A stretch of 64,000 nt of DNA. Origin: Anaeramoeba ignava BMAN. Lineage: Eukaryota > Protista > Anaeramoebae. The notes beneath the pieces were generated by a model. That model did no database searches. It was given only the letters and a program-made list of their open reading frames with translations, and had not been told where the DNA came from. Each line of letters starts with the position of its first letter. Positions within the stretch are counted from its first letter, which is position 1. The position numbers and the translations under genes were made by a program. Where the stretch lies: positions 1,054,001 to 1,118,000 of the forward strand of contig JAPDFW010000070.1 in assembly GCA_028826165.1 (NCBI GenBank), in the 5' to 3' direction. Below, piece after piece: positions 12,541-43,890 of this stretch.

Positions 12541-12774
12541 TTTAAATTAAATTTTAATTTTAATTTGTTGTTTTTTTTATTTTATTTGCTAAAATTTAAC
12601 AAACAAAAAGAAAAAGAAAAAATGATTTAAAAAAAAGATTTTTTTTTTTTTTTTTTGATCTTAAATAATAAAAAAAAATAAAAGAAAAAGAAGAAAAATA
12701 AAGAAGAAAAATTAAAAGCAAATCAACATTTTTTAAAAATCTAATTAACTTTTTAATTTCAATTTAAATATTTT

Positions 12775-15700
12775 TTGATTTAAATATCTGATTTAATTTT
12801 GGATTTAATTTTGGATTTAAATATTATTTTAATTTTGGATTTAATTTTGGATTTAATTTTGGATTTAAATATCTGATTTAATTTTGGATTTAATTTTGGA
12901 TTTAAATATTATTTTAATTTTGGATTTAATTTTGGATTTAATTTTGGATTTAAATATTATTTTAATTTTGGATTTAATTTTGGATTTAATTTTGGATTTA
13001 ATTTTGGATTTAATTTTGGATTTAAATATTATTTTAATTTTGGATTTAATTTTGGATTTAAATATTTGATTTAAATATTATTTTAAATATTAATTTAATT
13101 ACTTGATTTAAATATTATTTTAAATATTAATTTAAATATTGATTTAAATATTATTTTAAATATTAATTTAAATATTGGATTTAAATATTTTGGATTTAAA
13201 TATTTTGGATTTAAATATTTTGGATTTAAATATTATTTTAAATATTAATTTAAATATTTTGGATTTAAATATTTTGGATTTAAATATTTTGGATTTAATT
13301 ACTGATTTAATTATTGATTTAAATATTTAATTTAAATATTGATTTAAATATTAATTTAAATATTAATTTAAATATTAATTTAAATATTAATTTAAATATT
13401 GGATTTAAATATTTGATTTAAATATTATTGATTTAAATATTAATTTAAATATTTGATTTAATTATTTTGGATTTAAATATTTTGGATTTAAATATTTTGG
13501 ATTTAAATATTTTGGATTTAAATATTTTGGATTTAATTTTGGATTTAAATATTTTAGATTTAAATATTTTGGATTTAAATATTTTGGATTTAAATATTTT
13601 GGATTTAATTTTAGATTTAAATATTTTGGATTTAAATATTTTGGATTTAAATATTGATTTAAATATTTGATTTAAATATTTGATTTAATTATTGATTTAA
13701 ATATTGATTTAAATATTGATTTAAATATTTTGGATTTAAATATTTGATTTAAATATTGATTTAAATATTAATTTAAATATTTTGGATTTAATTTTGGATT
13801 TAATTTTGGATTTAAATATTAATTTAAATATTAATTTAAATATTTGATTTAAATATTTGATTTAAATATTTTGGATTTAAATATTTTGGATTTAATTATT
13901 TTGGATTTAAATATTTGATTTAAATATTAATTTAATTACTGGATTTAAATATTTTGGATTTAAATATTTTGGATTTAAATATTGATTTAAATATTTTGGA
14001 TTTAAATATTGATTTAAATATTGATTTAAATATTAATTTAAATATTTTGGATTTAATTTTGGATTTAATTTTGGATTTAATTTTGGATTTAATTTTGGAT
14101 TTAATTTTTGGATTTAAATATTATTTTAAATATTAATTTAATTACTTGATTTAAATATTATTTTAAATATTAATTTAAATATTAATTTAAATATTGATTT
14201 AAATATTAATTTAATTATTAATTTAAATATTTGATTTAAATATTATTTTAAATATTAATTTAATTACTTGATTTAAATATTGATTTAAATATTAGATTTA
14301 AATATTTGATTTAAATATTTGATTTAAATATTAGATTTAAATATTTGATTTAAATATTTGATTTAAATATTTGATTTAAATATTTGGATTTAAATATTTG
14401 ATTTAAATATTGATTTAAATATTTGATTTAAATATTTGATTTAAATATTTTGGATTTAAATATTGATTTAAATATTTGATTTAAATATTTGATTTAAATA
14501 TTTGATTTAATTTAAATATTTGATTTATTAATTTAAATATTTGATTTAAATATTAATTTAAATATTTGATTTAAATATTAATTTAAATATTAATTTATTT
14601 GATTTAAATATTGATTTAAATATTTGATTTAAATATTGATTTAAATATTGATTTAAATATTTGATTTAAATATTGATTTAAATATTTGATTTAAATATTG
14701 ATTTAAATATTTGATTTAAATATTGATTTAAATATTGATTTAAATATTTGATTTAAATATTGATTTAAATATTGGATTTAATTGATTTAAATATTTGATT
14801 TAAATATTTGATTTAAATATTGATTTAAATATTTGGATTTAAATATTAATTTAAATATTGATTTAATTATTTGATTTAAATATTGATTTAAATATTGATT
14901 TAAATATTTTGGATTTTAAAATATTTGATTTAAATATTGATTTAAATATTAATTTAAATATTGATTTAAATATTAATTTAAATATTGATTTAAATATTAA
15001 TTTAAATATTGATTTAAATATTAATTTAAATATTTGATTTAAATATTTGATTTAAATATTGATTTAAATATTGATTTAAATATTGATTTAAATATTGATT
15101 TAAATATTTTGATTTAAATATTAATTTAAATATTGATTTAAATATTTGATTTAAATATTAATTTAAATATTTGATTTAAATATTAATTTTAAATATTGAT
15201 TTAAATATTTGATTTAAATATTGATTTAAATATTGATTTAAATATTGATTTAAATATTGATTTTAAATATTAATTTAAATATTGATTTAAATATTAATTT
15301 AAATATTTGATTTAAATATTTGATTTAAATATTTGATTTAATTAATTTAAATATTTGATTTAAATATTAGATTTAAATATTGATTTAATTTTAGATTTAA
15401 ATATTTAATTTAAATATTATTTAGATTTAAATATTTGATTTAAATTTAATTTGGATTTAATTTTGGATTTAAATATTTTGGATTTAATTATTGATTTAAT
15501 TATTGATTTAAATATTGATTTAAATATTAATTTAAATATTTGATTTAAATATTTTGGATTTAAATATTTGATTTAAATATTTTGGATTTAAATATTGATT
15601 TAAATATTTTGGATTTAAATATTGATTTAAATATTTGATTTAAATATTGATTTAAATATTTTGGATTTAATTTTGGATTTAATTTTGGATTTAATTATTG

Positions 15701-15965
15701 ATTTAAATATTGGATTTAAATATTATTTTAAATACTTTGGATTTAATTATGGATTTAAATATTAGATTTAAATATTAATTTAAATATTTGATTTAAATAT
15801 TTGATTTAAATATTAGATTTAAATATTTGATTTAAATATTTGATTTAAATATTTGATTTAAATATTTTGGATTTAAATATTTGATTTAAATATTTGATTT
15901 AAATATTTTTGATTTAAATATTAATTTAAATATTTGATTTAAATATTAATTTAAATATTATGGAT
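12775..15965. repeat. ~3.2 kb satellite of GATTTAAATATT(TT)/GGATTTAATTTT 12-15 bp units
   Basis: Some two hundred or more variant units built on the palindrome ATTTAAAT; the LDLNI-type ORFs are translations of this repeat. Confidence 0.95.
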
Positions 15966-18297: not shown

Positions 18298-20030
18298 AAT
18301 TTATTATTTTAAACATAAAATTAAATATTAAATTATATTTTTAAATTAATTTATAAATTAAATATTAAATTAATTCTATTCTTATTTTTTATATTTATAT
18401 GTTAAATATTTAAACAATAAAATATTTAAATCTAAAACAATAAATTATTATTTTAATAATAAAATTAAATATTAAATCATATTTTTAAATTAATTTATAA
18501 ATTGAATATTAAATTAAATCTATTCTTATTTTTATATTTTATGTTAAATATTTAAATAATAAAATATTTAAATCTAAAACAATAAATTATTATTTTAAAC
18601 ATAAAATTAAATATTAAATTATATTTTTAAATTAATTTATAAATTAAATATTAAATTAAACCTATTCTTATTTTTATATTTTTATTTTTAACAATAAAAT
18701 TAAATATTAAATTATATTTTTAAATTAATTTATAAATTAAATATTAAATTAAATTTATTCCCATTTTTATATTTATATGTTAAATATTTAAATAATAAAA
18801 TATTTAAATCTAAAACAATAAATTATTATTTTAAACATAAAATTAAATATTAAATTATATTTTTAAATTAATTTATAAATTAAATATTAAATTAAATCTA
18901 TTCTTATTTTTATATTTATGTTAAATATTTAAATAATAAAATATTTAAATCTAAAACAATAAATTATTATTTTAAACATAAAATTAAATATTAAATTATA
19001 TTTTTAAATTAATTTATAAATTAAATATTAAATTAAATCTATTCTCATTTTTATATTTAATATGTTAAATATTTAAATAATAAAATATTTAAATCTAAAA
19101 CAATAAATTATTATTTTAACAAAATTAAATATTAAATTATATTTTTAAATTAATTTAAATTAAATATTAAATTAAATCTATTCTTATTTTTATATTTATA
19201 TGTTAAATATTTAAATAATAAAATATTTAAATCTAAAACAATAAATTATTATTTTAACATAAAATTAAATATTAAATTATATTTTTTAAATTAATTTATA
19301 AATTAAATATTAAATTAAATCTATTCTTATTTTTATATTTATATGTTAAATATTTAAATAATAAAATATTTAAATCTAAAACATTAAATTATTATTTTAA
19401 ACATAAAATTAAATATTAAATTATATTTTTAAATTAATTTTAAATTAAATATTAAATTAAATCTATTCTTATTTTTATATTTAATAAAGGAAAAATATTT
19501 AAATCTAAAACAATAAATTATTATTTTAAACATAAAATTAAATATTAAATTATATTTTTAAATTAATTTATAAATTAAATATTAAATTAAATTTATTCTT
19601 TTATATTTATATGTTAAATATTTAAATAATAAAATATTTAAATCTAAAACATTAAATTATTATTTTAATAAAATTAAATATTAAATTATATTTTTAAATT
19701 AATTTATAAATTAAATATTAAATTAAATCTATTCCATTTTTATATTTATATGTTAAATATTTAAATAATAAAATATTTAAATCTAAAACATTAAATTATT
19801 ATTTTAAACATAAAATTAAATATTAAATTATATTTTTAAATTAATTTATAAATTAAATATTAAATTAAATCTATTCATTTTTTATATTTATATGTTAAAT
19901 ATTTAAATAATAAAATATTTAAATCTAAAACAATAAATTACAAATTGAATGAATTAAATATTAAATTATATTTTTAAATTAATTTATAAATTAAATATTA
20001 AATTAAATCTATTTTCATTTTTATATTTAA
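18298..20030. repeat. Tandem array of ~140-bp AT-rich unit (about 12 copies)
   Basis: The landmark TAAAACAATAAATT recurs at 18811, 18952, 19096 and 19234 (spacing 138-144 bp). Confidence 0.92.
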
Positions 20031-20325: not shown

Positions 20326-20610
20326 AATTTAAAGAAAATAATAAAAAATTTAAAATAAAATTAAATTAAAATTAAAATTAAAAAGAAATTTTTTTCTTTT
20401 TTAATTGAATAACTGATGTTTATGTTTTATTGATTAAATTTTTGTTATTATTATTAAATTTATTATTAAATTTATTATTATTATTATTTAAGTTATTAAA
20501 ATTCTTTTTGTTTTTAAAAAGAGAAGTTGTAAAAAAGTTCTGTTTCTTCTTTTTAAAATCTTTTTAAAATCTTTTTAAAATTTTCTTTAATATTTTTATT
20601 ATTTTGATTT

Positions 20611-21556
20611 CTAATAAAAGAATCCAAGAATTTTTCCACCAGTTCTTTTTTTTCTAGCTTCTTCATGATCCATAATTCCATAAGAAGTTGTTAAAACAAT
20701 ATAACCGAATTGTCTTGAAGGAAGTAAATTATTAACCCATGATTCAATATCACCAAGTCCAACATCAAATCTTGGACTTATAACTCCACATTTATTTATT
20801 CTTCCAATTAATTCAACAACTATTTTTCCACTTCTATGATCATCAATAACTTCAAATTCTCCAATATATCCTTTTTTTTTTTTTCAATTTTTGAAAATTT
20901 AAATCAAAATTAAAATTAATATTAAAATCAAAATTAATATTAAAATTAATATTAAAATCAAAATTAAAATAAAAATTAAAATTAAAAATTAAAATTAAAA
21001 TTAAAATTAAAATTAAAATTAAAATTAAAATTAATTAATAATTAAATATATAATTAAAATTCATTTATAAATTAAAATTAAAATTAAAATTAAAATTAAA
21101 ATTAAAATTAAAATTAAAATTAAAATTAAAATTCATTTATAAATTAATATTAAAATTAAAATTAAAATTAAAAATAAAATTAAAAATAAAATTAAAATTA
21201 AAATTAAAATTAAAATTAAAATTAAAATTAAATTAAAATTAAAATTAAAATTAAAATTAAAATTCATTTATAAAATTAAAATTAAATTAAAATCAAAATT
21301 AATATTAAAATTAGAATTAAAATTCATTTATAAATTAATATTAAAATTCATTTATGAAATAATAATAAATTAAAATTAAAATTCATTTATAAAATTAAAA
21401 TTTATAAAATTTATAAAATTTACCATGCTTCATCATAACTTTAAGAAATTTTATTATAACTTTTGATGCTGGTCTAATTAAAACTTGTCTCTTTCCTCTT
21501 TTCTCTGCATTTCTCATTGCAAGTAAACAATCTGCTAAAACAGAAATTCTAACCAT
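20611..21556 (-). CDS. RPS15A: 40S ribosomal protein S15a (uS8)
   Basis: Exon 1 21556-21424 ([28 protein letters not shown]), exon 2 20870-20611 ([36 protein letters not shown]); 130 aa; GT-AG intron. Not in the ORF track. Confidence 0.97.
20890..21420. repeat. Intronic (AAAATT)n / TTCATTTATAAA minisatellite
   Basis: Fills almost the whole RPS15A intron. Confidence 0.85.
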
Positions 21557-21851: not shown

Positions 21852-22184
21852 ATGCCACCAAAAAATAAGAAACTTGCACAAGAAGGAATTGGAAACAAAT
21901 TAGCAGTTGTTATGAAAAGTGGAAAATATTTTTTTGGACAAAATCAATGTTTAAAATCACTTCGAAAAAAATCAGCAAAATTAGTTGTGATATCAAATAA
22001 TTGTCCACCTTTAAGACGTTCAGAAATTGAATATTATTCTTTATTAAGTGGTTGTTCTGTTCTTAAATTTAAAGGAAGTAATGTCGATCTTGGAAGATCT
22101 TGTGGTCGTTATTTTAGAGCAAGTGTTGTTACTATTATTGATCCTGGTGATTCAGATATTTTGGATTTATCAAAAGCTAACTAA
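21852..22184 (+). CDS. RPL30: 60S ribosomal protein L30 (eL30)
   Basis: KLAVVMKSGKY, NNCPPLRRSEIEYY, LGRSCGRYFR, IIDPGDSDI. Confidence 0.97.
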   Translation: MPPKNKKLAQEGIGNKLAVVMKSGKYFFGQNQCLKSLRKKSAKLVVISNNCPPLRRSEIEYYSLLSGCSVLKFKGSNVDLGRSCGRYFRASVVTIIDPGDSDILDLSKAN

Positions 22185-23465: not shown

Positions 23466-26400
23466 TTAATTGTTTTGTAATTTTTCTAAAGCCAATTTTC
23501 CATATTTTTGAATATTTTGATTATTTGGGAAATTATTCATTGATTTAATAATAGGTTCAATTCCTTTTAAATTTTTAATTTCAATTTGGTTTTCTATTTT
23601 TATATATTTTTAATTTGGTAAATAAATTTGAAATTTGATTAATTTTTTGGATTGATTTTTGGAAATAAATAATTGATTAAAAAATAATTGAATTAAAATA
23701 TTTTTTATTTTTATTTACCATTATTATTAGCAGCAATATTCTTTAAAGCTCTACATCCTTGATATTGAACATTTTGATTATTTGGGAAATTATTCATTGA
23801 TTTAATAATAGTTTCAATTCCTTTTAAATTTCGTATTTCAATTTGGTTTTCTATTTTTTATATATTTTTAATTTGGTAAATGAATTGAAATTGATTAATT
23901 TTTGGTTAATAATAAATAATAATTTATTTACCATTATTAGTAGCAATATTCCATAAAGCTCCACATCCTTGATATTGAATATTTTGATTATTTGGGAAAT
24001 TATTCATTGATTTAATAATAGTTTCAATTCCTTTTAAATTTCGTATTTCAATTTTGTTTTCTATTTTTTATATATTTTTAATTTGGAAAATAAAATTGAA
24101 ATTAATTAATTTTTTGGATTTATTTTTGGAAATAAAATTGATTAAATTTTTGATTAATAATTGATTAAAATAATTTTCTCAATTCATTTTTGATATTATT
24201 CATTTATTTTTATTTTTAATTTTATTTACCTTTATTATTAGCAGTAATATTCCCTAAAGCTCCACATCCATTTTCTTGAATATTTTGATTATTTGGGAAA
24301 TTATTCATTGATTTAATAATAGTTTCAATTCCTTTTAAATTTCGTATTTCAATTTTGTTTTCTATTTTTTATATATTTTTAATTTGGAAAATAAATTTGA
24401 AATTAATTAATTTTTTGATTAATTAAATTGAAATAAAATATTTTTTATTTTTATTTACCATTATTATTAGCAGCAATATTCCATAAAGCTCCACATCCTT
24501 GTTTTGAATATTTTGATTATTTGGGAAATTATTCATTGATTTAATAATAGTTTCAATTCCTTTTAAATTTCGTATTTCAATTTGGTTTTCTATTTTTTAT
24601 ATATTTTTAATTTGGAAAATAAATTTGAAATTAAAATTGGATTAAATTTTTGATTAATAATTAATAATAATTAATAATTAATAATTGAATTAAAATATTT
24701 GAATTTTTGATTGTTTTTAATTACCTTTATTAAAAGATATATTATTTAAAGCTCTACATCCATATTTTTGAATATCTTGATTATTTGGGAAATTATTCAT
24801 TGATTTAATAATAGTTTCAATTCCTTTTAATTTTCGTATTTTAATTTGGTTTTCTATTTTATATATTTTTAATTTAGTAAATAAAATTGAAATTAATTAA
24901 TTTTTTGGATTAATTTTTGGAAATAAAATTGATTAATAAATAATTGAATTAAAATATTTTTTATTTTTATTTACCTTTATTATTAGCAGCAATATTCTTT
25001 AAAGCTCTACATCCTTTATATTGAACATTTTGATTATTTGGGAAATTATTCATTGATTTAATAATAGGTTCAATTCCTTTTAAATTTCGTATTTCAATTT
25101 TGTTTTCTATTTTTTATATATTTTTAATTTGGAAAATGAATTGAAATTAATTAATTTTTGGTTAATAATTAATAATAAATAATAAATAATTGGTTAAATT
25201 AATTTTTTTAATTTTATTTACCATTATTAGTAGCAATATTCCCTAAAGCTCCACATCCATTTTCTTGAATATTTTGGTTATTTGGGAAATTATTCATTGA
25301 TTTAATAATAGTTTCAATTCCTTTTAAATTTCGTATTTCAATTTTGTTTTCTATTTTTTATATATTTTTAATTTGGAAAATAAAATTGAAATTAATTAAT
25401 TTTTTGGATTAATTTTTGGAAATAAAATTGATTAAATTTTTGATTAATAGTTGATTAAAATAATTTTCTCAATTCATTTTTGATATTATTCATTTATTTT
25501 TATTTTTAATTTATTTACCATTATTAGCAGTAATATTCCCTAAAGCTCCACATCCATTTTCTTGAATATTTTGGTTATTTGGGAAATTATTCATTGCTTT
25601 AATAATAGTTTCAATTCCTTTTAAATTTCGTATTTCAATTTTGTTTTCTATTTTTTATATATTTTTAATTTGGAAAATAAATTGAAATTGAAATGGATTA
25701 ATTTTTTGATTAATAATTGATAATAAATAATTGAATAAAAATAGTTTTCTAAATGATTTATTTATTTTTTAATTTTATTTACCATTATTAGTAGCAATAT
25801 TCCATAAAGCTCCACATCCATTTTTTTGAATATTTTGATTATTTGGGAAATTATTCATTGCTTTAATAATAAGTTCAATCCCTTTTAAATTTCGTATTTC
25901 AATTTTGTTTTCTATTTTTTATATATTTTTAATTTGGTAAATAAAATTGAAATTAATTAATTTTTTGGATTGATTTTTGGAAATAAATAATTGATTAAAA
26001 AATAATTGAATTAAAATATTTTTTATTTTTATTTACCATTATTATTAACAGTAATATTCTTTAAAGCTCTACATCCTTTATATTGAACATTTTGATTATT
26101 TGGGAAATTATTCATTGATTTAATAATAGGTTCAATTCCTTTTAAATTTTTAATTTCAATTTGGTTTTCTATTTTTTATATTTTAATTTGAAATGAATTT
26201 GGAATTGATTAATTTTTGGATTAATAAAATTAATAATAAATAATTGGTTAAATTAATTTTTACCATTATTATTAACAATATTGATAAAGCTCCACATCCA
26301 TATTTTTGAATATTTTGATTATTTGGGAAATTATTCATTGATTTAATAATAGTTTCAATTCCTTTTAAATTTCGTATTTCAATTTTGTTTTCTATTTTTT

Positions 26401-28855
26401 ATATATTTTTAATTTGGAAAATAAATTTGAAATTAATTAATTTTTTGGATTAATTTTTGGAAATAAAATTGATTAAATTTTTGATTAATAGTTGATTAAA
26501 ATAATTTTCTCAATTCATTTTTGATATTATTTTTTATTTTTATTTTAAAATTTACCTTTATTATTTTCAGTAATATTCCCTAAAGCTCCACATCCATTTT
26601 CTTGAATATTTTGGTTATTTGGGAAATTATTCATTGCTTTAATAATAGTTTCAATTCCTTTTAAATTTCGTATTTCAATTTTGTTTTCTATTTTTTATAT
26701 ATTTTTAATTTGGAAAATAAATTGAAATTGAAATGGATTAATTTTTTGATTAATAATTGATAATAAATAATTGAATAAAAATAGTTTTCTAAATGATTTA
26801 TTTATTTTTTAATTTTATTTACCTTTATTAGTAGCAATATTCCATAAAGCTCCACATCCATTTTTTTGAATATTTTGGTTATTTGGGAAATTATTCATTG
26901 ATTTAATAATAGTTTCAATTCCTTTTAAATTTCGTATTTCAATTTTGTTTTCTATTTTTTATATATTTTTAATTTGGAAAATAAATTTGAAATTAATTAA
27001 TTTTTTGGATTTATTTTTGGAAATAAAATTGAAATTATTAATTTTTGATTAATAGTTGATTAAAATAATTTTCTCAATTCATTTTTGATATTATTCATTT
27101 ATTTTTATTTTTAATTTATTTACCTTTATTATTAGCAGTAATATTCCCTAAAGCTCCACATCCATATTTTTGAATATTTTGATTATTTGGGAAATTATTC
27201 ATTGATTTAATAATAGGTTCAATTCCTTTTAAATTTCGTATTTCAATTTTGTTTTCTATTTTTTATATATTTTTAATTTGGAAAATAAATTGAAAATTGA
27301 AATTGATTAATTTTTTGATTAATAATTAATAATAAACAATTGATTCAATTATTTGAATTTATAATTTTATTTGTTTTTTAATTTTATTTACCATCATTAG
27401 CAGCAATATTCCATAAAGCTCCACATCCATTTTCTTGAATATTTTGATTATTTGGGAAATTATTCATTGATTTAATAATAGTTTCAATTCCTTTTAAATT
27501 TCGTATTTCAATTTGGTTTTCTATTTTTAATATATTTTAATTTGGGAAATAAAATTGAAATTAATTAATTTTTGGATTTATTTTTGGAAATAAAATTGAT
27601 TAAATTTTTGATTAATAATTTTATTTGTTTTTTATTTTATTTTTATTTACCATTATTAGCAGCAATATTCCATAAAGCTCCACATCCATTTTCTTGAATA
27701 TTTTGATTATTTGGGAAATTATTCATTGATTTAATAATAGGTTCAATTCCTTTTAAATTTCGTATTTCAATTTTGTTTTCTATTTTTTATATTTTTATTT
27801 TTGGGAATTAAAATTTTTGGAAATAAAATTGATTAAATTTTTGATTAAATTTTCTTAATTTATTTTTAATTTATTTACCTTGATTAAAAGATATATTATT
27901 TAAAGCCCAACATCCTTGTTCTTGAATATTTTGATTATTTGGGAAATTATTCATTGATTTAATAATAGTTTCAATTCCTTTTAAATTTCGTATTTCAATT
28001 TGGTTTTCTATTTTTATTTTTAATTTGGAAAATAAATTTGAAATTAATTAATTTTTGGATTTATTTTTGGAAATAAAATTGATTAAAAATTAATTAAATT
28101 AAAATATTTTTTTTATTTTTGATTTATTTTTAATTTATTTACCATTAATAGCAATATTACATAAAGCTCCACATCCATTTTCTTGAATATTTTGATTATT
28201 TGGGAAATTATTCATTGATTTAATAATAGTTTCAATTCCTTTTTAAATTTTAATTTCAATTTTGTTTTCTATTTTTTATTTTTAATTTGGAAAATAAAAT
28301 TGAAATTAATTAATTTTTGGATTTATTTTTGGAAATAAAATTGATTAAATTTTTGATTAATAATTTATTAAAATAATTTTCTCAATTCATTTTTGATATT
28401 ATTCATTTATTTTTATTTTTAATTTATTTACCTTTATTAGCAGCAATATTCAATAAAGCTCCACATCCATTTTTGAATATTTTGATTATTTGGGAAATTA
28501 TTCATTGATTTAATAATAGTTTCAATTCCTTTTAAATTTCGTATTTCAATTTTGTTTTCTATTTTTTATATATTTTTAATTTGGAAAATAAAATTGAAAT
28601 TAATTAATTTTTTGGATTTATTTTTGGAAATAAAATTGATTAAATTTTTGATTAATAGTTTATTAAAATAATTTTCTCAATTCATTTTTGATATTATTCA
28701 TTTATTTTTATTTTTAATTTATTTACCTTTATTAGCAGCAATATTCCATAAAGCTCCACATCCTTGATATTGAATATTTTGATTATTTGGAAAATTATTC
28801 ATTGATTTAATAATAGGTTCAATTCCTTTTAAATTTCGTATTTCAATTTTGTTTT
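23466..28855 (-). repeat. Tandem exon-intron array (~210-310 bp period) of armadillo-repeat exons
   Basis: Internal exons: 23719-23850, 23932-24060, 24230-24361, 24459-24589, 24725-24853, 24975-25106, 25222-25350, 25519-25647, 25783-25911, 26037-26168, 26264-26391, 26556-26687, 26823-26951, 27124-27255, 27392-27520, 27651-27779, 27879-28007, 28143-28268, 28432-28558, 28727-28855. Each is bounded by tag|AAAAC and G|gtaa. Consensus ENKIEIRNLKGIETIIKSMNNFPNNQNIQxxGCxALxNIxxNN. Confidence 0.93.
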
Positions 28856-31800
28856 CTATTTTTATATTTTTATTTTGGAAATTGAAAATAAAATTGAAAT
28901 TGAAATTGAAAATTGATTAAATTTTTGATTAATTTGAGTTGTAATAATAAATGATTTAGATTTATTTTGGATTAATAAAATTTAATAATAAATGATTTAG
29001 ATATATTTTGAATTAATTTTTCATAATAATTTGAAATGTAAAAAAAGTATGAAAATAAATGTTCTGTTGTTTTGTTTGTTTATAAATTTTTTTACTTGAA
29101 TTAAGAGCAATGTTAATTAAAATTGAAATAGATTTTTCTTGAATATTTTGATTATTTGGAAAATTATTGATTGTGTTAATAATAGTTTTAATTCCATTTA
29201 ATTTAGAAATTTCTATTCCTTTTGTTTCTCGATTTTCTTTTTCTTCTCCTTTTTGATTTTGATTTGATTTTGATTTTGATTTTGATTTTGATTTTGATTT
29301 TGATTTTGATTTTGATTTTGATTTTGATTTTTGATTTTGATTTTGATTTTGATTTTGATTTTGATTTTGATTTTGATTTTGATTTTGAATTTTAAAAAGA
29401 AATTTTTTAAATTTCCAAATAATTCATTATTTTTGATTTTGATTTTTGATTTGATTTTTGAATTGAATTGATTTTTTGATTTTTGATTTTTGATTAAAAT
29501 TTAAATTTTTTTAATTTGAAAATATTAATTTTCAGATGAATTAATTTAATTTTGAATTTATAAGAGGTTTAATTGCTTCGTATTTTTATTTCAATTTGAT
29601 TGAAATTTCAAATTTTTTTTTATTTTTGATTTTGATTATTCAAAAATTATTTCAAATAAAAATCAAATAAAATAAATAAAAAATAAATTTATATTTATTT
29701 TTTTCGAAAATTATTCATCATTTTTAATAAAGTTTCAATTCCTTTTAAAATTTCAATTTGGTTTTCTATTTTTTTATTTTTATTTTGGAAAATAAAAATT
29801 AATTAATAAATTTTTGATTAATAATTGATAATAAATAATTGATTAAAATAATTTTCTCAATTTCATTTATTTTAAATTTATTCATTGACCTTTTTATTAA
29901 TAACAATATTTAAAGCTCCACATCCTTGAAATTGAATATTTTTGATTATTTGGAAAATTATTCATTGTTTTTAATAATAGGTTTAATTCCTTTAAATTTC
30001 AATTTGGTTTTTATTTTTAATATTTTTATTTCAAAAAATAAATTTTCAAATAAAAATTAATAAATTTTTATTTTATTTACTTTTCATTTTCTTTTGCAAA
30101 TTGTTGTAAAATAAAACATCCATTTTCTTGAATAATATGATTATTTGGGAAATTATTCATACATTCAACAATAAAAAGAGCATCAATTTCAATTAATCCT
30201 TTTGTTTTTGTTTTGATTGATTTTTTTTTATTTGAAAGTTATTTTTGTTTAAAAATTTTTGTTTTTGAATTTTATTGAAGTTCTTGTAAAAATTTTTGTT
30301 TTTGATTTTGAATTTTTCATTTTGAATTTTTTTTTGAATATTTTGGTTTCTTGATCAATTTTTGGAATAAAATTCATTTTTCTTTTTCAATTTCATTTTA
30401 AATTCTTGAATTATTTTTCAATTTTATTTAAATCATTTTTATTTTCCATTTCTTCAATTTTTTTTTGAATTTTTTCTAAATATTTATTTTTTTTGAATTT
30501 AATCCCATTTTTTTGATTTTCATTTCCATTTTCAATTTTTTTTTGTTGAATAAATTGTTTAAATTCTGTAAATTCTTCTTTTTTTTTTTCAAATTCATTT
30601 TTAAATCGTTGAATTGTTTCTTCAAATGATTTTAACTCTTCTTCTGTTTTCGATTTGGGAAAATTTATTAATTCTTGATAATTTTTATCAATTTCTTCCA
30701 AATTTTTATTCTTTTTTTTTTTGAATTTATTTTGAATTTCTTGAATTTGTTTTTGAAAAATTTCTAAATCTTGTTTTCTATTTTGTTCAAATAATTTTTT
30801 CAAATCATTAATCATTTCCTTAAATTGTTGTAAATCTTCTTTTTTCATTTTTTCATTTTCATTTAGAATTAATTGTTGAATTTTTTCTTTAATTTCTTTT
30901 TTCCATTTTTCATATTCTCCTTGAATTTCTTGAATTTCATTTTTAATTTTTTCTAATTTTTCTTTTTCTTTTTGTTTTTCAAAATTTGATTTTTGGATTT
31001 TTCTTTGTTTAGAATCAAGTTGATTAATTTGAAATTTTGATTTTTGTTTTTCTTGTTCAAATTCTTCAATATTTGAATTTAATAAAACAATTTTATTTTG
31101 AATTTGGGAAATTGACTGATTTTCGATTTGTTGAATTTGAAATTGATTTATTGATTTTGTTTGTGAAATTTGATTTAATAAATTTGAAAAAGAATTTTCC
31201 ATTTCCATTTTTTCATTTTCATTTTGGTTTTCTTTAATTTCAAATTTAATTAATTTTATCAATTTTTTTTGATTATTTTGGTTCAATTTTTGTTCAATTT
31301 GTTGAATAATTTGAAATTGATTTGGAAGATTTTGATTTAAAGAAATTAATCCAATAAAATTGTAAATTTGATTTTGATTTTGATTTAAATATTTATCAAA
31401 ATTTGGATTTGAAATGATAAATTGAATATTTTGGAAAATAAATTTTTCACAATTTTGAGAAAGATTTTTTGAATTAATTTTTTGAGTTTTAAAATAAATT
31501 TCCAAAATATTTTCAATATTAAAAATTGATTGAATTTCAAGTTCAATTTTGAATTGAATTTCTTTTAATTTAATTTGATTTGCAAATTTAAAATATTCAT
31601 CAAATTTTTGTTTATCAAATTTAAATTTTCCATTATAAAAAAATTTAATAATTGGTTTAACAATTTCAGAACTAAAATTATTAAAATAAATTGAATTAAA
31701 TTTATTTTCTCTTCTATTTATCATAAAATATTTTGAACGAGCTTCTAAAATTGATTTATGACAAGGAATTAAAATTTTATCTTTTCCACAATAAATTTGA

Positions 31801-31986
31801 AAATCTGAAGTTTTTTTATTTCCAAACATTAAACCAATTTGTTTATTTGCTTGTTTTATTAAGAATTTATTGAATTTTTTAATTTGGATTTTGAATTTTT
31901 TGATTTTGATTTTGATTTTGATTTTGATTTTGATTTTGATTTTGATTTTGATTTTGATTTTGATTTGAATTTTGATTTGAATTCAT
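23466..31986 (-). CDS. BTB/BACK + coiled-coil + armadillo-repeat array protein, one ARM repeat per exon
   Basis: BTB (SDFQIYCG..IPCHKSILEARSKYF..IIKFFYNG) lies in ORF 30411..31829, with a probable ATG at 31986 (MNSNQN...; frame interrupted). Divergent ARM exons at about 30081-30200 and 29096-29248. Twenty internal exons lie between 23719 and 28855. Terminal exon 23593-23466 (...QKYGKLALEKLQNN*). Linkage between the BTB exon and the ARM exons crosses error-rich sequence and is inferred. Confidence 0.72.
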
Positions 31987-32309
31987 TTCTTTTCTTTTGT
32001 TTTGAAATAAAAATATTTTAATTAATAAATTATTAATTATTTTGATTATTTAAATGTTTTTAATAAATAATTTATGTTTAATTTATTATTTTTATATTTA
32101 ATTTTTGGTTTATTTTATTAAATAAAAAAAGGAAAAATAAATTTTTGCTTTCAATTTTTGATTAAATAAATTTTATTTTAATTAATAATTTATAAATATT
32201 TTGATTATTGGAATGTTTTTATTATTATTTTTATGTTTAATTAGATATTTTTATATTTAATTTTTTTAAAATATTTACTTAATTAAATTTAAAAAAGGAA
32301 AAAATGAAA

Positions 32310-34860
32310 AATAAAAATATAAAAATGAAAATTATTTTAATTTAATATTTAATTTATAAATTAATTTAAAAATATAATTTAATATTTAATTTTATTATTA
32401 AAATAATAATTTAATGTTTTAGATTTAAATATTTTATTATTTAAATATTTAACATATAAATATAAAAATGAGAATAGTTTAATTTAATATTTAATTTATA
32501 AATTAATTTAAAAATATAATTTAATATTTAATTCTATGTTTAAAATAATAATTTAATGTTTTTAGATTTTATTTTATTATTTAAATATTTAACATATAAA
32601 TATAAAAATAAGAATAGATTTAATTTAATATTTAATTTATAAATTAATTTTAAAAAATATAATTTAATTTTTATGTTTAAAATAATAATTTTATGTTTTA
32701 AATTTAAATATTTTAATATTTAATTTATAAATTAATTTAAAAATATAATTTAATATTTAATTTCATGTTTAAAATAATTTAATGTTTTAGATTTAAATAT
32801 TTTATTAAATATTTAACATATAAATATAAAAATAAGAATAGATTTAAATAAATATTTTTTTATAAATTAATTTAATATTTAAATTTATGTTTGATTTTAT
32901 GTTTAAAATAATAATTTAATGTTTTAAATTTAAATATTTTTTATTATTTAAATATTTAACATAAAAATATAAAAAAAAAGAATAAATTTAATTTAATATT
33001 TAATTTATAAATTAATTTAAAAATATAATTTAATATTTAATTTTATGTTTAAAAATTTAAATATTTTATTATTGAAATATTTAAACATATAAATATAAAA
33101 ATGAAAATAGATTTAATTTTTAATATCCAATTTATAAATTAAAAAGGAAAAATTTTAATATTTAATTTTTTATTTTAAAATAATAATTTAATGTTTTAAA
33201 TTTTAAATATTTTTATTATTTAAATATTTAATATATAAATTAAAAATGAAAATATATAATTAATTTAAAATAAATTAATTTAAAAAATATAATTTAAAAT
33301 TTGATTTTATGTTTTAAAATAATAATTTAATGTTTTTAGATTTAAATATTTTATTATCTTTAAATATTTAACATAAATATAAAAATGAAAATAGATTTAA
33401 TTTAATATTTAAATAATTTTATGTTTTAATTTTATGTTTAAAATAATAATTTATTTTTAGATTTAAATATTTTATTTAAATATTTAACATATAAAAATAA
33501 AAATGAAAATAGGTTTTTAATATTTAATTTATAAATTAAAATTAATAATTTTAATGTTTTAGATTTAAATATTTTTATTATTTAAATATTTAACATATAA
33601 ATATAAAAATGAAAATATAATTAATTTAATATTTAATTTATAAATTAATTTTAAAAATATAATTTAATATTTGATTTTATGTTTAAAAATAATAATTTAA
33701 TAAATATTTAACATAGTAAAAATAAGAATAAGTTTAATTTAATATTTAATTTATAAATTAATTTAAAAATATAAATTAATATTTGATTTTATGTTTAAAA
33801 TAATAATTTAATGTTTTTTAAATTTAAATAATATTTAAATATTTAACATATAAATATAAAAATGAAAAAAATAGAATTAATTTAATATCCAATTTATAAA
33901 TTAATTTTAAAAAAATATAATTTAATGTTTGATTTTATGTTTAAAATAATAATTTATTTTATTATTTAAATATTTAACATAAAAATATAAAAATGAGAAT
34001 AGATTTAATTTAATATTAAAATAATAATTTAATTTTAGATTTAAATATTTTATTATTTAAATATTTAACATAAATATAAAAATAAATTTAATTTAATATT
34101 TAATTTAAATTAATTTAAAAATATAATTTAATATTTAATTTTATGTTTAAAATATTAATTTAATGTTTTAAATTTAAATATTTTATTATTTAAATATTTA
34201 ACATATAAATATAAAAAAAATGAAAATATAATTAATTTAATATTTAATTTTATAAATTAATTTAAAAAATATAATTTAATATTTGATTTTATGTTTAAAA
34301 TAATAATTTTATTATTTAAATATTTAACATAAATATAAAAATAAGAATAAGTTTAATTTAATATTTAATTTATAAATTAATTTAAAAATATAATTTAATA
34401 TTTAATTTTTGTTAAAATAATTTATTGTTTTAGATTTAAATATTTTTATTATTTAAATATTTAACATAAATATAAAAATGGAAATAGATTTAATTTAATA
34501 TTTAATTTATAAATTAATTTAAAAATATAATTTAATATTTAATTTTATGTTTAAAATAATAATTTATTGTTTTAGATTTAAATATTTTATTATTTAAATA
34601 TTTAACATATAAATATAAAAAATAAGAATAAGTTTAATTTAATATTTAATTTATAAATTAATTTAAAAATATAATTTAATATTTAATTTTATGTTTAAAA
34701 TAATAATTTATTGTTTTAGATTTAAATATTTTATTATTTAAATATTTAACATATAAATATAAAAAATGGAAATAGATTTAATTTAATATTTAATTTATAA
34801 TTTAATTTAATATTTAAATTTATGTTATTTTATGTTTAATTTATTGTTTTAGATTCAAAA
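32310..34860. repeat. Tandem array of the same ~140-bp unit as 18298-20030, in reverse-complement orientation
   Basis: The unit AATTTATTGTTTTAGATTTAAATATTTTATTATTTAAATATTTAACATATAAATATAAAAAT... is the reverse complement of the 18.3-20.0 kb unit; copies are more degenerate. Confidence 0.9.
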
Positions 34861-37380: not shown

Positions 37381-40300
37381 TTAAATTAATTTTAATAATA
37401 AATCAATTATTGAATTTTCATTTAATTGATAATAATCTTTTAAATCTTCAAATTCTTCATTTATTTCTAAGTTACTTTCTTTTCTTTCATTATTAAATTC
37501 ATCATGATATAAAAAATAAATTAATTGTTTTATAGTTTCATTTGATTTTTTTGAATAATCATGAACTTTATTTGATGAATCTTGAACACTTAAAAACATT
37601 CCTTTAAATAATTCACTTCTTATAAATAATATTAATTTGTGAACTTTGATTTCTTCTTCATTTTCATTTTCATTTTTATTTAAAATTATTGTAAAATCTT
37701 TTTTGGAATCTTCTTCATATAATTTCTTTAAATCTTTTAAAATTCCTTTTCTTCCTTTTTTATTTTCAATCCATTCTGAATCAATTTCAATTTCTTTTAA
37801 AAATTCTCTTAATTTTTCTTCTTTTTCCATTTCTAAATTTGGTTTCTTTTTATTTTTCAAATTTCTATCTTTTTGATCATCATCATCATCATCATCACTT
37901 GAAGAACTTGTAGAACTTGTAGAACTTAGAGAAATTGAAAGGATTGAAAGAAGTGAAATTGTATCATTTTCACTTTCACTTTTGTGATCATTTTTATTTA
38001 AATTTTGATATAAATTTCCGAGTTGAATTTTATATTTTTTTTGGATTGAATTTGAATTTGAATTTGAGTTTTGAATTTGAATTTGATTTTGAATTTGATT
38101 TTCAAAATCAACAAATCCTGAATAAAGGAAATTTAGAGCAATTTCAACTTCTTCTTTTGATTTTTGTGAGCAAATTTTAATAAATTTTGATAAAATATTT
38201 TCATTATTATCAAATCTTGTTAATAAAATTAATTTATGAACATTAAATTCAAAATCATCTTTTGTTTTGATTTTAAAATCTGATAAATTTTCATTTGATT
38301 TTAATAAGTTATTAAAATCTTGATTAATTGAATGCACTTTTGAAAATGAATTTATAAATTCTTTTGATTTTTTAAGATTTGGTTTTAAATCTAAAAAATT
38401 AGCATCATTCATCAATAATAATTGAATTGCCTTTTCATTCTTATTTTGAATTGAAATTGAAAGAGGTGTTTTTTTGTAAATACTTTTGGCATTTACATCT
38501 GCTCCTTTTTCAATAAGGAGTTTCATATATTTGAGTGAGACTGGTTTTCTGGAAAAACAAATGAAATTCAATGGTGTTTGATTTTGATTTGTTTTGGCAT
38601 TAACATCAGCACCTGAATTAATTAAAAATTCAATCATTTCATATGTTTGTTTTTGGTGATTTTGACTTTGGCAAACTAGATGTAATGGTGTTTGATTTTG
38701 ATTTGTTTTGGCATTGATTCTTGCTCCTGAATTAATTAAAAATTTGATCATTTCATATGTTTGTTTTTGGCGATTTTGACTTTGACAAACTAGATGTAAT
38801 GGTGTTTGATTTCGATCTGTTTTGGCATTAACATCAGCACCGTTTGAAATGAAATTTTGAATAATTTCAACTGATTTCTCATTTTGATTCAAACAAGCAA
38901 AATGTAAAGGAGTTTCTTGGTAATTATTTTTTGCATTAACATCTGCTTTTTGTGAAATTAGGTATTTAATCACTTCAAGTGAATTTTGGATTGAATCTTT
39001 TGTTTGATGTTGAATTTGACAAGCAAAATGTAACGCTACTTCATTTTGTTTGGTTTTGGCATTAACATCTACTCCTTCTGAAATTAGCAGTTTGACAACT
39101 TCAATAGAGTTTTTATGTTTACAAGAATAGTGCAAAGGTGTTGATTTGTCATAAAGAGTTCTGACATTGGCATGCGCTCCTTTTGAAATTAAATATTTAA
39201 CAGCTTCATCATTAATCTGATGTCTACAAATAATATGTAAAGGAGTTTCGTGATGTTTCGTTTTGGCATTGACATCTGCATTATTTTCAACAAGATTTTT
39301 GATAATTTCAATGGAATTTTGTTGGCAGGCATAATGCAAAGGAGTTTGATTTGTGCTTTTTGTCTTGACATTGACATCTACTTTTCTCGAAACAAGAAAT
39401 TCAACAACTTCTTTTAATTTTTGATAACAAGCTAAATGTAATACTGTTTCATTTCTAACTGTTTTGGCATTTAATTTTGATTTTTTTGAAACGAAATATT
39501 TGATAATTTCAAGTAAATTTTCATTCTGATTTTCATTTCTACAAATAAAATGTAAAACTGTTTCTTTTTCTTTCGTTTTGGCATTGACATCTGCTTTATT
39601 TAAAACAAGAAATTTGATCATTTCAAATGTGTTTTGATTTATATTTTGATATTGACACACAAAATGCAAAGGTGTTTCTTTATATTTAGTTTTGGCATTG
39701 ATTTTTGCTCCTTTTTCAATTAAAAATTTGATAATTTCAAATGTATTTTGATTTTGGCTTTGACAAATTAAATGCAAAGGTGTTTGCTTTATATTTGTTT
39801 TGGCATTGATTCTTGCTCCTTTTTCAATTAAAAATTTGATAATTTCAAATGAATATTGATTTTGACTTTGACAAACAGCATGCAAAGGTGTTTCATAAGT
39901 ATTTATTATTTGAGATTTAACTTGTGCTCCTTTTTCAATTAAAAGTTTGATAATTTCAAATGAATATTGATTTTGACTTTGACAAACAGCATGCAAAGGT
40001 GTTTCTTCATTATGGCTTAATTTGACATTAACATCTGCTCCGTTAGAAACAAGAAATTTAATAATTTCAAATGGATATTTATTTTGAATTTCTTTTTCAT
40101 TTTCTTTATTTTCATTTTCTTTATTTTCATTTTCTTTTTCAATTTCACTTTCACTTTCACTTTCACTTTCTTTTTGAATTTTTCGTTTTAGACTTTGACA
40201 TATTAAATATAAAGGTGTTTCTTTTCTAAATCTTAATGTGGCATTGACATCTGCTCCTTTTTCAATTAAAAATTTAATAATTTCAAATAAATATTCATTT

Positions 40301-40467
40301 TTTTCTGGATATTTGCAAACAAAATGTAAAGGTTGTCCATCTTCATATAATTTTTTGGCATTGACATCTGCTCCTTCTTCAATTAAAGATTTAATTTCTT
40401 CAAATGAATTTTGTGTTAAAAATTCACAACTATCAATTAATTTATCATTTTTTTCAATTTGATTCAT
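37381..40467 (-). CDS. Ankyrin-repeat + tandem BTB domain protein
   Basis: Many ETPLHxxC...IIKFLIEKGADVNAK repeats; two BTB motifs (SDFKIKT..FNVHKLILLTR; KDFTII..IKVHKLILFIRSELFKGMF). Confidence 0.92.
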   Translation of the reverse strand: MNQIEKNDKLIDSCEFLTQNSFEEIKSLIEEGADVNAKKLYEDGQPLHFVCKYPEKNEYLFEIIKFLIEKGADVNATLRFRKETPLYLICQSLKRKIQKESESESESEIEKENENKENENKENEKEIQNKYPFEIIKFLVSNGADVNVKLSHNEETPLHAVCQSQNQYSFEIIKLLIEKGAQVKSQIINTYETPLHAVCQSQNQYSFEIIKFLIEKGARINAKTNIKQTPLHLICQSQNQNTFEIIKFLIEKGAKINAKTKYKETPLHFVCQYQNINQNTFEMIKFLVLNKADVNAKTKEKETVLHFICRNENQNENLLEIIKYFVSKKSKLNAKTVRNETVLHLACYQKLKEVVEFLVSRKVDVNVKTKSTNQTPLHYACQQNSIEIIKNLVENNADVNAKTKHHETPLHIICRHQINDEAVKYLISKGAHANVRTLYDKSTPLHYSCKHKNSIEVVKLLISEGVDVNAKTKQNEVALHFACQIQHQTKDSIQNSLEVIKYLISQKADVNAKNNYQETPLHFACLNQNEKSVEIIQNFISNGADVNAKTDRNQTPLHLVCQSQNRQKQTYEMIKFLINSGARINAKTNQNQTPLHLVCQSQNHQKQTYEMIEFLINSGADVNAKTNQNQTPLNFICFSRKPVSLKYMKLLIEKGADVNAKSIYKKTPLSISIQNKNEKAIQLLLMNDANFLDLKPNLKKSKEFINSFSKVHSINQDFNNLLKSNENLSDFKIKTKDDFEFNVHKLILLTRFDNNENILSKFIKICSQKSKEEVEIALNFLYSGFVDFENQIQNQIQIQNSNSNSNSIQKKYKIQLGNLYQNLNKNDHKSESENDTISLLSILSISLSSTSSTSSSSDDDDDDDQKDRNLKNKKKPNLEMEKEEKLREFLKEIEIDSEWIENKKGRKGILKDLKKLYEEDSKKDFTIILNKNENENEEEIKVHKLILFIRSELFKGMFLSVQDSSNKVHDYSKKSNETIKQLIYFLYHDEFNNERKESNLEINEEFEDLKDYYQLNENSIIDLLLKLI

Positions 40468-40514
40468 TAATTTAAAAAAAAAAATGAAAAAAATGAAAAA
40501 AAAAATTTTTTGAT

Positions 40515-43500
40515 TTAAATTAATTTTAATAATAAATCAATTATTGAATTTTCATTTAATTGATAATAATCTTTTAAATCTTCAAATTCTTCATTTATTT
40601 CTAATTTACTTTCTTTTCTTTCATTATTAAATTCATCATGATATAAAAAATAAATTAATTGTTTAATAGTTTTATTTGATTTTTTTGAATAATCATGAAC
40701 TTTATTTGATGAATCTTGAACACTTAAAAACATTCCTTTAAATAATTCACTTCTTATAAATAATATTAATTTGTGAACTTTGATTTCTTCTTCTTCATCA
40801 TTTTCATTTTTATTTAAAATTATTGTAAAATCTTTTTTGGAATCTTCTTCTTCATATAATTTCTTTAAATCTTTTAAAATTCCTTTTCTTCCTTTTTTAT
40901 TTTCAATCCATTCTGAATCAATTTCAATTTCTTTTAAAAATTCTCTTAATTTTCTTCTTTTTTTTCGTTTTCTTCTTTTTGGGAATCAAAAAAGTAAATG
41001 GGATTGCTTTCATTTTCAAATTGTGATTTAATCATTTCAAAATCAACAAATCCTGAATAAATGAAATTTAGAGCAATTTCAACTTCTTCTTTTGATTTTT
41101 GTGAGCAAATTTTAATAAATTTTGATAAAATATTTTCATTATTATCAAATCTTGTTAATAAAATTAATTTATGAACATTAAATTCAAAATCATCTTCTGT
41201 TTTGATTTTAAAATCTGATAAATTTTCATTTGATTTTAACAAGTTATTAAAATCTTGATTAATTGAATGCACTTTTGAAAATGAATTTATAAATTCTTTT
41301 GATTTTTTGAGATTTGATTTTAAATCTAAAAAATTAGCATCATTCATTAATAATAATTGAATTGCCTTTTCATTCTTATTTTGAATTGAAATTGAAAGAG
41401 GTGTTTCTTTATTTAAATTTTCTTGATTAACCACAATTTTTTTACGAAGAAGAAATTTAATTGATTCTATCGAACCACTTCTACATGAATAATGTAATAC
41501 ATTCTCATAAGTTTTTGTTAATGAATTAACATCAGCTCCGTTAGAAATTAAAATTTCTAGAATCTGGGTTGAATTTTTTTGTTGAGCAATATAATGTAAT
41601 GGTGTTTCATTATGGAGTGTTTTTGAATTAATATCTGCTCCATTTGATATCAGAAATTTGATAATTTCAGATGATTTTTCATTTTGATTCAAACAAGCAA
41701 AATGTAATGCTGATTTTTGGTAGTTATTGCAAGTATTAATATCAATTCCATTTGATATAAGAAATTTGATAATTTCAAAAGAATTTTCATGTGAATTTTG
41801 ACAAGCAAAATGCAATGCTGTTTGTATATGTTTTGTTTTTGCATTAATATCAATTCCGTTTGAGACAAGAAATTTGATAAGTTCTAATGAATTATTGTTT
41901 TGGTACTGGCAAGCCAAGTGTAAAAATGTTTGATTTTCAAATGTTTTTGCATTGATATCAGTTTTGTTTGACACAAGAAATTTTGTAATTTCAAAAGAGT
42001 TTTCATTTTGATTCTCGCAAGCATAATGTAAAGGTGTTATTTTTTGGAATTTTGTTCTAGCATTCACATCTGCCTTGTTTTCAACAAGGAATTTTATAAT
42101 TTCAAATGAATTTTCATTTGGATATTTGCAAGCAAAATGCAAAGTTGTTTCTTTTTCTTGTTTCGTTTTTCCATTAATGCTTGCTTTTTTTGAAACAAGA
42201 AATTTGATAATTTCGAATAAATCTTCATTTCCTTTTTGATATTTTAAAGCATAATGTAAAACTGATTCGTGTTCATTTGTATTTGAATTAACATCTGCTT
42301 TCTTTTCAACAAGATATTTGATAATTTCAAATATTTTTTCATTTTCGTTTTGATATTGTAAAGCATAATGTAAAGGTGTTTCTTTGTATTTTTTTGTTTT
42401 GATATTAACATCTGCTTTGTTATCAACAAGATATTTGATAATTTCAAATAATTTTTCATTTTCCTTTTGATATTGGAAAGCAAAATGCAAAGCACACTCT
42501 TTATGATTTGTTTTCAAATTTATATCAATTTTTTTTGAAGCAACAAGATACATGATAATTTCCAATGAAACTTTTTTATTTTGTAAAGCAAAGTGCAAAA
42601 CATTCTTTTTATTTTTTGTTTTTGCACTCAGATCAACCCCTTTTGAAACTAAGTATTCAACAACTTCAAGAGATATTTTCTCATTCTGTAAAGCAAAATG
42701 AAGAGCATTTTCATTTTGATATGTTTTTGCATTGATTTCAGCTCCTTTTTCAATTAACAATTTGATAATTTCAAGTGAATTATTTTGGCATGCAAAATGC
42801 AATACACTTTGTTTGTCTTTTGTGATGCCATTAATATCAATTTCTTTTGAAATGAGAAATTCAATAACTTCAAGTGTCATTTTTTTGTTTTGACAAGCAA
42901 AATGCAAGAATGATTCCTTTTGAACTGTTTTTGAATGAGTGTATATTCCTTTTGAAATTAATAACTTTGTAATTTCAATTAAATCCTCATTTCTGTTTTT
43001 CAGAGCACAATGCAAAACAGTTTCATAATTATTCATCCTTGCCTCAATCTTAACTCCTTTTTCAATCAAAAATTGAACAACTTGAAGTGAGTTACTTTTG
43101 CAAGCCAAATGTAATGCGTTTTCACCCCTCGTAGTTGTGGAATTAATATCAATCACTTTTGGCAATAAGAAAGTGATAACTTCAATTGAATTGTTTTGGC
43201 AAGCATAACGAAACATTGATTCATGTCCATAACTTGTTAATTTGGGATTAAGTTCTTTTTCGTGTAAAAATTGAATAACTTCAACTGAATTATATTGACA
43301 AGCAAAACCTAAAATAGACATATAACTATTTGTTATTGCATCAATGTCAGCCCCTTGCTCAATTAAAAACTCAATTATATCCACTGAATCATTTTTGCAA
43401 GCAAAATGTAAAGCAGTTTCATTTTGGCTTGATTTTGCATTAACATTAGCTCCATTATCAATTAGATAATTGATTATCTCAAGCTTGTTTTCTGATTTTG

Positions 43501-43831
43501 AGTAAATAATTGAATAATGAAGGATTGTTTTTCCTTCTTTGTCTTTTGCCTCTATATCTGCTCCTTTTTCAATTAGTAATTTAATAACCTCAAAATTGTA
43601 ATTATTTTTAAAAGCAAAATGCAAAGCAGTTCTTTTTTCTTCTTCATCAATTCCATTCGGGTTTGCTCCCCTTTCAATTAAGAATTGGATCATCTCTTTT
43701 GAAACTTTTTTTTTAATTGCAAACTTTAGTATTTTTTGTGCTTTTTTCTTAATTTGTTTATCTATCAAATCATTATCAATTAATTTTAATTGTTCTATAT
43801 CATTTTGTTCAATAATTTTTAAAAGATCCAT
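40515..43831 (-). CDS. Ankyrin-repeat + tandem BTB domain protein (paralog), apparent frameshift near 40960
   Basis: ATG at 43831 (MDLLKIIEQ); about 20 ankyrin repeats. The C-terminal BTB region is nearly identical to the neighbour and continues in another frame through ORF 40515..40733. Confidence 0.85.
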
Positions 43832-43890
43832 TTCTGGAAAGAAAAATGAAAAATCATAAAAACAAAAAAAAAAATACAAATTGTTTATTT

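Follow-up and report, generated by a model that had tools for sequence, protein, structure and literature searches.

Can a single-celled eukaryote assemble a diversified set of protein binders from exons that each encode one armadillo (ARM) repeat? The question is raised by a locus of the metamonad Anaeramoeba ignava BMAN, which we examined in a 64,000-nucleotide (nt) stretch of contig JAPDFW010000070.1 (positions 1,054,001 to 1,118,000), called the window throughout. The assembly comprises 42.8 Mb in 147 contigs, with the window on contig C60. On the minus strand of the window, between 31986 and 23466, a head exon encoding a BTB domain is followed by an array of near-identical ARM exons. The original prediction proposed that this gene encodes a diversifying receptor, and a diversifying binding surface was borne out by variable codons on one face of ARM helix 3 and by a signal of positive selection. 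The explanation that we favor, and hold to be probable, is an inherited family of modular binders in which an ARM solenoid on a conserved head is diversified by repeat turnover and positive selection.

The cassette array and its genomic family

Parsing of acceptors and donors on the minus strand from 28855 to 23719 recovered the 20 internal units and, beyond them, the stop-bearing cap exon that had been predicted. Each unit has an acceptor of the form aaatag/AAAAC and a donor of the form G/gtaa (slashes mark exon boundaries); these sites are uniform and consensus-like across the array, and the introns between units are stop-rich and 81-172 nt long. Sixteen of the 20 units are open, at 129 or 132 nt, with phase 1-1 ends and one ARM repeat per exon. 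The claim that every unit is of this kind has to be narrowed to these 16, as units 2, 10, and 17 are frameshifted and unit 3 holds an in-frame TAA; miscounted A runs could account for the lesions of units 2, 3, and 17. The features of the array are as follows.

23719..28855, minus strand: cassette array, 20 exons, from the acceptor/donor pattern and sequence parse
Minus strand, acceptor-side starts of units 1-10: 28855, 28558, 28268, 28007, 27779, 27520, 27255, 26951, 26687, 26391
Minus strand, acceptor-side starts of units 11-20: 26168, 25911, 25647, 25350, 25106, 24853, 24589, 24361, 24060, 23850
28432..28558, minus strand: unit 2, 127 nt, frameshift, A run 2 nt short
28143..28268, minus strand: unit 3, 126 nt, in-frame TAA, A-run lengths shifted
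26264..26391, minus strand: unit 10, 128 nt, frameshift, 1 nt short near codon 37
24459..24589, minus strand: unit 17, 131 nt, frameshift, 1 nt short at codon 30
23466..23593, minus strand: terminal capping exon with TAA at 23468-23466, of the same type as the last exon of paralogs, P0011, and P0162
22996..23399, minus strand: two decayed ARM units past the cap, at about 23399-23266 and 23107-22996

The window contains 27 ARM-like units in total, all on the minus strand, with no inverted or orphan cassette exons among them. Identity between array exons is 83-97%. Every exon differs from every other and no exact repeat exceeds 256 nt, so the array is not assembly stutter, and a simple assembly expansion is ruled out.

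Armadillo proteins are built from tandem repeats of about 42 residues, which fold into a three-helix solenoid and carry a conserved Asn on helix 3, and the array encodes such a region. Pfam matches of the four single exons scanned, to Arm and/or ARM_LRRK2, were weak and all below the cut-off (Arm E 0.002-0.014 in three of the four), and the multi-repeat paralog P0011 matched ARM_LRRK2 with E 9e-27. A structure model of a second paralog, P0162, matches ARM folds, and the cassettes also match Vac8, beta-catenin, and LRRK2.

A genome-wide search for paralogous arrays, as the original prediction had suggested, found at least 34 by match coordinates, on 24 contigs, with 150 exon matches at 76% identity or more out of 1407 candidates. 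We read the paralogs from 3-4 kb loci (L001-L045) together with the match coordinates. Each array is single-stranded as listed and has from a few units to about 20 (C46 and C17, for example); the open reading frame (ORF) at L043 is M0811_05014, and the array on C110 is the ARM part of M0811_11943. The public model of P0162, an annotation and not a transcript, joins two lead-in exons, five cassettes, and a cap in genomic order, using all C110 exons, and its junctions are exactly the predicted phase-1 ones.

Heads vary across the family. Many are BTB, while the annotated P0011 and P0162 have a RING-kinase-SH3 head ahead of the same exon type, an arrangement also observed at L012-L013 (C110:52272-54740). 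These heads rule out an array exclusive to BTB; because ARM cassettes also stand on RING-kinase-SH3 heads, the array has passed from one type of effector domain to another. BTB or RCC1-BTB also occurs together with related ARM repeats in more distant A. ignava "aardvark" proteins. None of the 20 matches named came from A. flamelloides, a weak negative.

Selection is concentrated on the helix-3 face

We measured codon entropy in 90 exons from 17 arrays. The exon filter fixed 13 framework positions, so that zero entropy at these is partly by construction; a looser parse gave the same near-invariance. Entropy peaks at codons 30, 31, 34, 37, and 41 (1.8-2.7 bits), positions spaced along a single face of helix 3, and the framework is for the most part nearly invariant. 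Codon 38 encodes Asn in 75 of the 90 exons, and alignment with Vac8 places it at the conserved Asn. With an inferred numbering offset, the counterparts of codons 31 and 34 in designed armadillo proteins would be Glu30 and Trp33, described as peptide-binding residues (PMC4756613).

Nonsynonymous divergence (pN) is 0.36-0.42 on the face and 0.03-0.05 in the framework, with an overall synonymous divergence (pS) of 0.05-0.08. In a site test with a fixed tree and one branch scale, M2a was preferred over M1a, twice the log-likelihood difference (2dlnL) being 133 in the set of 88 exons and 11 in the 16 exons from the window. The M2a estimates were 4.4-5.0 for omega2 and 0.06-0.12 for omega0, and codons 3, 14, 18, 30, 31, 34, 37, and 41 were flagged in the 88 exons. 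A check that uses no tree gave the same ordering: in 14 unit pairs (not independent) with near-identical downstream introns, face codons differed at 15.1% of bases, framework codons at 3.0%, and introns at 1.8%. Selection is therefore shown to be concentrated on the helix-3 face.

When a unit tree was drawn from framework codons together with the upstream end of the intron, units of one locus fell together (29 changes vs 66.5 when shuffled); exchange between loci is limited, since units cluster in this way. Face residues change far more often on that tree, nearly all of their pairwise combinations recur across loci, and the five face sites form 70 haplotypes among the 90 exons. Intron types recur in blocks (units 8-11, 12-15, and 18-20), intron 8 being identical to intron 12, and the 5' and 3' halves of units often have different nearest relatives. 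Locus clustering, block duplications, and discordant halves fit unequal crossover, short conversion tracts, and repeated selected point change, and the first two together are the pattern expected of inherited tandem-repeat turnover.

The BTB head and its damaged junction with the array

Upstream of the array on the same strand lies the head, whose parts and junction are listed here.

31830..31986, minus strand: likely true 5' end, with an ATG at 31986 and an Asn/Gln-rich leader over (AAATCA)n; in paralogs the leader is in frame
30411..31829, minus strand: BTB (residues 4-96), 3-box/BACK-like helices, and a long helical Lys/Glu/Gln-rich stalk, in a 472-residue ORF with an early stop
30240..30430, minus strand: garbled end of the BTB exon, donor absent, with about ten indels that shift the frame, most of them losses of one base in A/T runs
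30081..30198, minus strand: first lead-in ARM exon (ARM0), 118 nt, 117 nt in paralogs
29490..30017, minus strand: broken or garbled lead-in units
About 30017-29891, minus strand: cassette without an acceptor; truncated unit from 29765
About 29620-29490, minus strand: second lead-in exon remnant
29251..29392, no strand: (TTTTGA)n microsatellite within an intron
29096..29242, minus strand: divergent lead-in ARM exon, 147 nt, phase 1-1, open

The Pfam scan of the head matched BTB alone (PF00651, E 1.2e-9, above the cut-off); the predicted BACK domain had no Pfam match and is recovered as 3-box/BACK-like by fold. The head ORF also matches SPOP. Its structure model (pLDDT 81) aligns in Foldseek over 160-183 residues with A55 BTB-BACK, SPOP, KBTBD2, and KLHL11, and the stalk may form a coiled coil, judging from its composition. 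Eight cullin C-terminal domains are present in the genome. Glu41 of the head is nearly invariant and aligns with the Glu of the SPOP phi-x-E motif (hydrophobic, polar, Glu), half of which is matched. The proposed Cullin-3 (Cul3) adaptor role is supported by fold; the head is probably a BTB adaptor, modeled as folding like Cul3-binding BTB-BACK proteins.

Joining of this head to the ARM exons was also part of the original prediction. For the family it is supported: in 8 of the 13 paralogs, an open BTB exon ends at a phase-1 donor, and a lead-in ARM exon of phase 1 begins after an intron of 75-158 nt. At the window locus the junction (30430-29400) is garbled and its donor lost, so that BTB and the substrate-binding domain do not share a single ORF as assembled. 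Of the remaining paralogs, four are interrupted by stops or frameshifts, and in one the acceptor is variant.

Two accounts of this damage compete. The lesions resemble Nanopore polishing errors, and we put it at somewhat better than even that the window copy is intact in the cell and mis-polished in the assembly, being a young pseudogene otherwise. R9 Nanopore reads underlie the assembly, which was polished with Racon, Nanopolish, and Pilon, and the introns of the genome are 92% A+T (PMC11550330). As assembled, the start codon at 31986 and the BTB domain are out of register by one base, and about ten indels fall within 190 nt from 30430, after 1.4 kb free of frameshifts. A poorly polished or mixed consensus is suspected because these indels are clustered and deletion-biased.

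The competing account, which is possible and the strongest of the alternatives we weighed, is that the window locus is a true pseudogene or silent donor array in which the link between head and array has decayed, its exons either persisting as conversion templates for active paralogs or decaying by birth-and-death. It concerns the window copy only and is compatible with our reading of the family. The leader frameshift, the junction indels with the lost donor and garbled lead-in exons, the four broken cassettes among 20, the decayed units past the cap, and the stops in 4 of the 13 paralog heads all agree with it. Against this, the lesions all fall within about 1 kb and are skewed toward loss of single bases in A/T runs, the assembly comes from polished R9 Nanopore reads, the 1.4-kb BTB ORF is open, and the window exons are under purifying selection (omega0 0.06 at 68% of sites). 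The window units make up a clade of their own and so give no obvious sign of serving as donors elsewhere, which counts against a donor array.

Repeats and further BTB genes lie around the gene. Two very AT-rich satellite fields (18298-20029 and 32300-34830) with a unit of about 143 nt, in opposite orientation and 82-99% complementary, flank a 12-kb block holding the RPS15a-like gene, RPL30, and the BTB-ARM gene. The two ribosomal protein genes lie just downstream of the array (L30 at 21852-22184, plus strand; S15a-like at about 20600-21500, minus strand). The intron of the S15a-like gene uses an A-rich acceptor, and A-rich AAG acceptors are therefore normal in the window. On the minus strand, 37381-45423 holds a BTB-BACK-TLDc gene (43891-45423) and two ankyrin-BTB genes, of which the ankyrin gene at 40946-43894 appears to continue past the stop near 40946 into a second BTB-like segment (40900-40500), another probable frameshift or intron. 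Near-identical tandem BTB-BACK-like ORFs at 50464-51282 and 53367-54221, each followed by a laminin-G/pentraxin-like ORF, mark a recent local duplication. Elsewhere in the window, 12772-15959 is a tandem array 3.2 kb long in which a 12-nt unit recurs about 250 times, with extreme GC skew, and 61600-64000 is GC-rich (41-46%) and has long coding character on the plus strand that sets it apart from the host genes; it may be a mobile element.

Mode of diversification and known counterparts

In the mechanism that we favor, a conserved head (BTB with 3-box/BACK-like helices and stalk, or RING-kinase-SH3) would be spliced to lead-in exons, cassettes, and cap, with all exons normally joined in order into one ARM solenoid. 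The solenoid groove would bind extended peptides through one pocket per repeat, set by codons 30, 31, 34, 37, and 41. AT-rich introns and symmetric phase-1 exons would let unequal crossover and gene conversion add, drop, or swap repeats in frame; this turnover would take place between generations, with positive selection fixing new pocket residues. A BTB head could then recruit a cullin-RING ligase, leading to ubiquitination of bound proteins. The likeliest driver, we infer, is non-self recognition, of symbionts, prey bacteria, viruses, or mobile elements.

Several points weigh against this reading. The flagged codons 3, 14, and 18 lie outside helix 3, and recombination can inflate site-model tests. 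The PHI-type test for recombination was mixed: window exons gave p 0.003-0.02 at short range alone, and the result was not significant with flanks or at longer range. Recombination among units is accordingly likely and not proven, as the signal is limited to window exons and short range. In the half-matched phi-x-E motif of the head, an Arg takes the place of the hydrophobic residue, and the loop has 4 residues fewer than that of SPOP. The method behind the public gene models was not found in the main text of the genome paper, and the window copy is broken as assembled.

The original prediction had placed the diversity within the cell, through combinatorial splicing or programmed recombination, neither of which is supported so far. 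Within-cell combinatorics is possible because the exons are symmetric. The same family could add regulated exon skipping and so reach a large isoform diversity in one cell: every open exon is symmetric and keeps the frame, the four broken units would be tolerated, and alternative splicing of repeat exons is reported for brown-algal ROCO leucine-rich repeat (LRR) exons (PMC11378527). We regard such skipping as unlikely, given splice sites that are uniform and consensus-like and a paralog model, P0162, that keeps every exon in order. Dscam-type clusters place one exon in each transcript, whereas annotated A. ignava paralogs include consecutive exons; the ARM fold needs several repeats. Doubtful to a greater degree is the broader idea that rearrangement in clonal lineages, or combinatorial splicing, yields an anticipatory repertoire of peptide readers with one exon per pocket, wired to a ubiquitin ligase; if true, a single-celled eukaryote would police symbiont, viral, or mobile-element proteins by means of an exon repertoire.

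Programmed or somatic DNA rearrangement in a clonal lineage, giving anticipatory recognition as in lamprey VLR or trypanosome VSG, is very improbable. The recurrence of face residues in nearly all pairwise combinations and the 70 five-site haplotypes would suit it, and disagreeing reads merged into one consensus could explain the garbled junction. The introns show by eye no signal-like motif beyond splice signals, however, the window lacks inverted or orphan donor cassettes, and the clustering of units by locus and the block duplications suit inherited turnover. The adenine-specific signature of diversity-generating retroelements, in which a reverse transcriptase copies variation from a template repeat, is also missing; such an element is rejected, as the variation follows particular codons, adenines are for the most part constant, and changes occur at G/T positions. 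The least credible explanation is neutral, minisatellite-like growth of a housekeeping scaffold with variation tolerated and not selected. A very AT-rich, repeat-prone genome, the tolerance of surface residues to change, and the broad expansion of the BTB family in A. ignava would favor it. Face codons, however, diverge at about eight times the pace of the introns beside them and outpace synonymous sites, and the other surface positions of helices 1 and 2 are nearly fixed.

Among known systems, the A. ignava family resembles the brown-algal ROCO-LRR and NB-ARC-TPR genes (Ectocarpus, Saccharina), which form a large family of tandem arrays with one repeat per symmetric exon. Their arrays show positive selection at about four concave-face sites and have broken among intact exons (PMC3341825, PMC11378527), and the A. 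ignava arrays likewise combine face selection with broken exons among intact ones. They differ in that the A. ignava repeat is ARM (129/132 nt, phase 1) and not LRR (72 nt) or TPR, the heads are BTB or RING-kinase-SH3 without ROC-COR/NB-ARC in Pfam, the window has no inverted intronic exons, and the host is a unicellular metamonad. The fungal HNWD repeats of Podospora (het-d, het-e, het-r) undergo concerted evolution and repeat-number variation, with four selected positions per repeat (PMC4986451). High internal repeat identity (85% or more in the HNWD type), selection on an interaction surface, and interchangeable N-terminal effector domains are shared with A. ignava; unlike its arrays, fungal HNWD/NLR genes carry WD, ANK, or TPR repeats on NACHT/NB-ARC proteins with a cell-death output, whereas the A. 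ignava repeats are ARM, exon-encoded, and on a ubiquitin-ligase-type head. The A. ignava arrays belong to neither the brown-algal nor the HNWD family because they have no nucleotide-binding domains.

The head resembles the BTB-Cul3 adaptors (SPOP, the KLHL family, ARMC5, and plant ABAP1/ARIA), which join BTB and 3-box/BACK-like helices to a substrate-binding domain. ARM and BTB also occur together in ARMC5 and ABAP1. The ARM part comes before BTB in ARMC5 and ABAP1/ARIA, unlike the A. ignava order of BTB then ARM, and these adaptors are low-copy with divergent repeats, unlike the 83-97% identical, hypervariable repeats and partial phi-x-E motif of A. ignava. Related repeat sequence is found in LRRK2-type or "aardvark" ARM proteins of other protists (Salpingoeca rosetta PTSG_10776), with U-box-kinase, DUF4062, ADP-ribosyltransferase, or RING heads. 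One exon per repeat is not general to this ARM type, since the S. rosetta gene, unlike the A. ignava arrays, is intronless with divergent repeats, and a metagenomic ARM-RING gene is uninterrupted. The metagenomic contig (L047:1-4415) carries two such uninterrupted ARM-RING genes, tightly packed at 56 nt apart, with repeats of the same type as the A. ignava arrays.

Diversifying repeat receptors with LRR, TPR, ANK, or WD repeats are known from algae, fungi, plants, and animals. A literature search, poor in subscription papers, found no description of the A. ignava ARM arrays, in keeping with the original remark that such a system was not known to be described for a BTB-ARM gene, and no diversifying receptors with armadillo repeats or in metamonads. 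The text of the genome paper does not mention armadillo, aardvark, or BTB, and its supplements hold one unrelated BTB entry.

The closest engineered counterparts are the designed armadillo proteins (PMC4756613, PMC11228518), in which near-identical modules stand between caps and a few helix-3 residues near Glu30/Trp33 set specificity with a conserved Asn, as is predicted for A. ignava. Unlike them, the A. ignava arrays are a natural analogue, built on a 43-44 residue LRRK2/aardvark-type repeat. Natural near-identical ARM modules that vary at the pocket positions engineers randomize offer a sample of pocket chemistry and a testable code from repeat to residue.

The BTB and RING heads on these arrays suggest that recognition ends in ubiquitination. 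This amoeba houses sulfate-reducing symbionts in a dedicated organelle, and the arrays give a concrete handle on how a unicellular host might separate partners from intruders.

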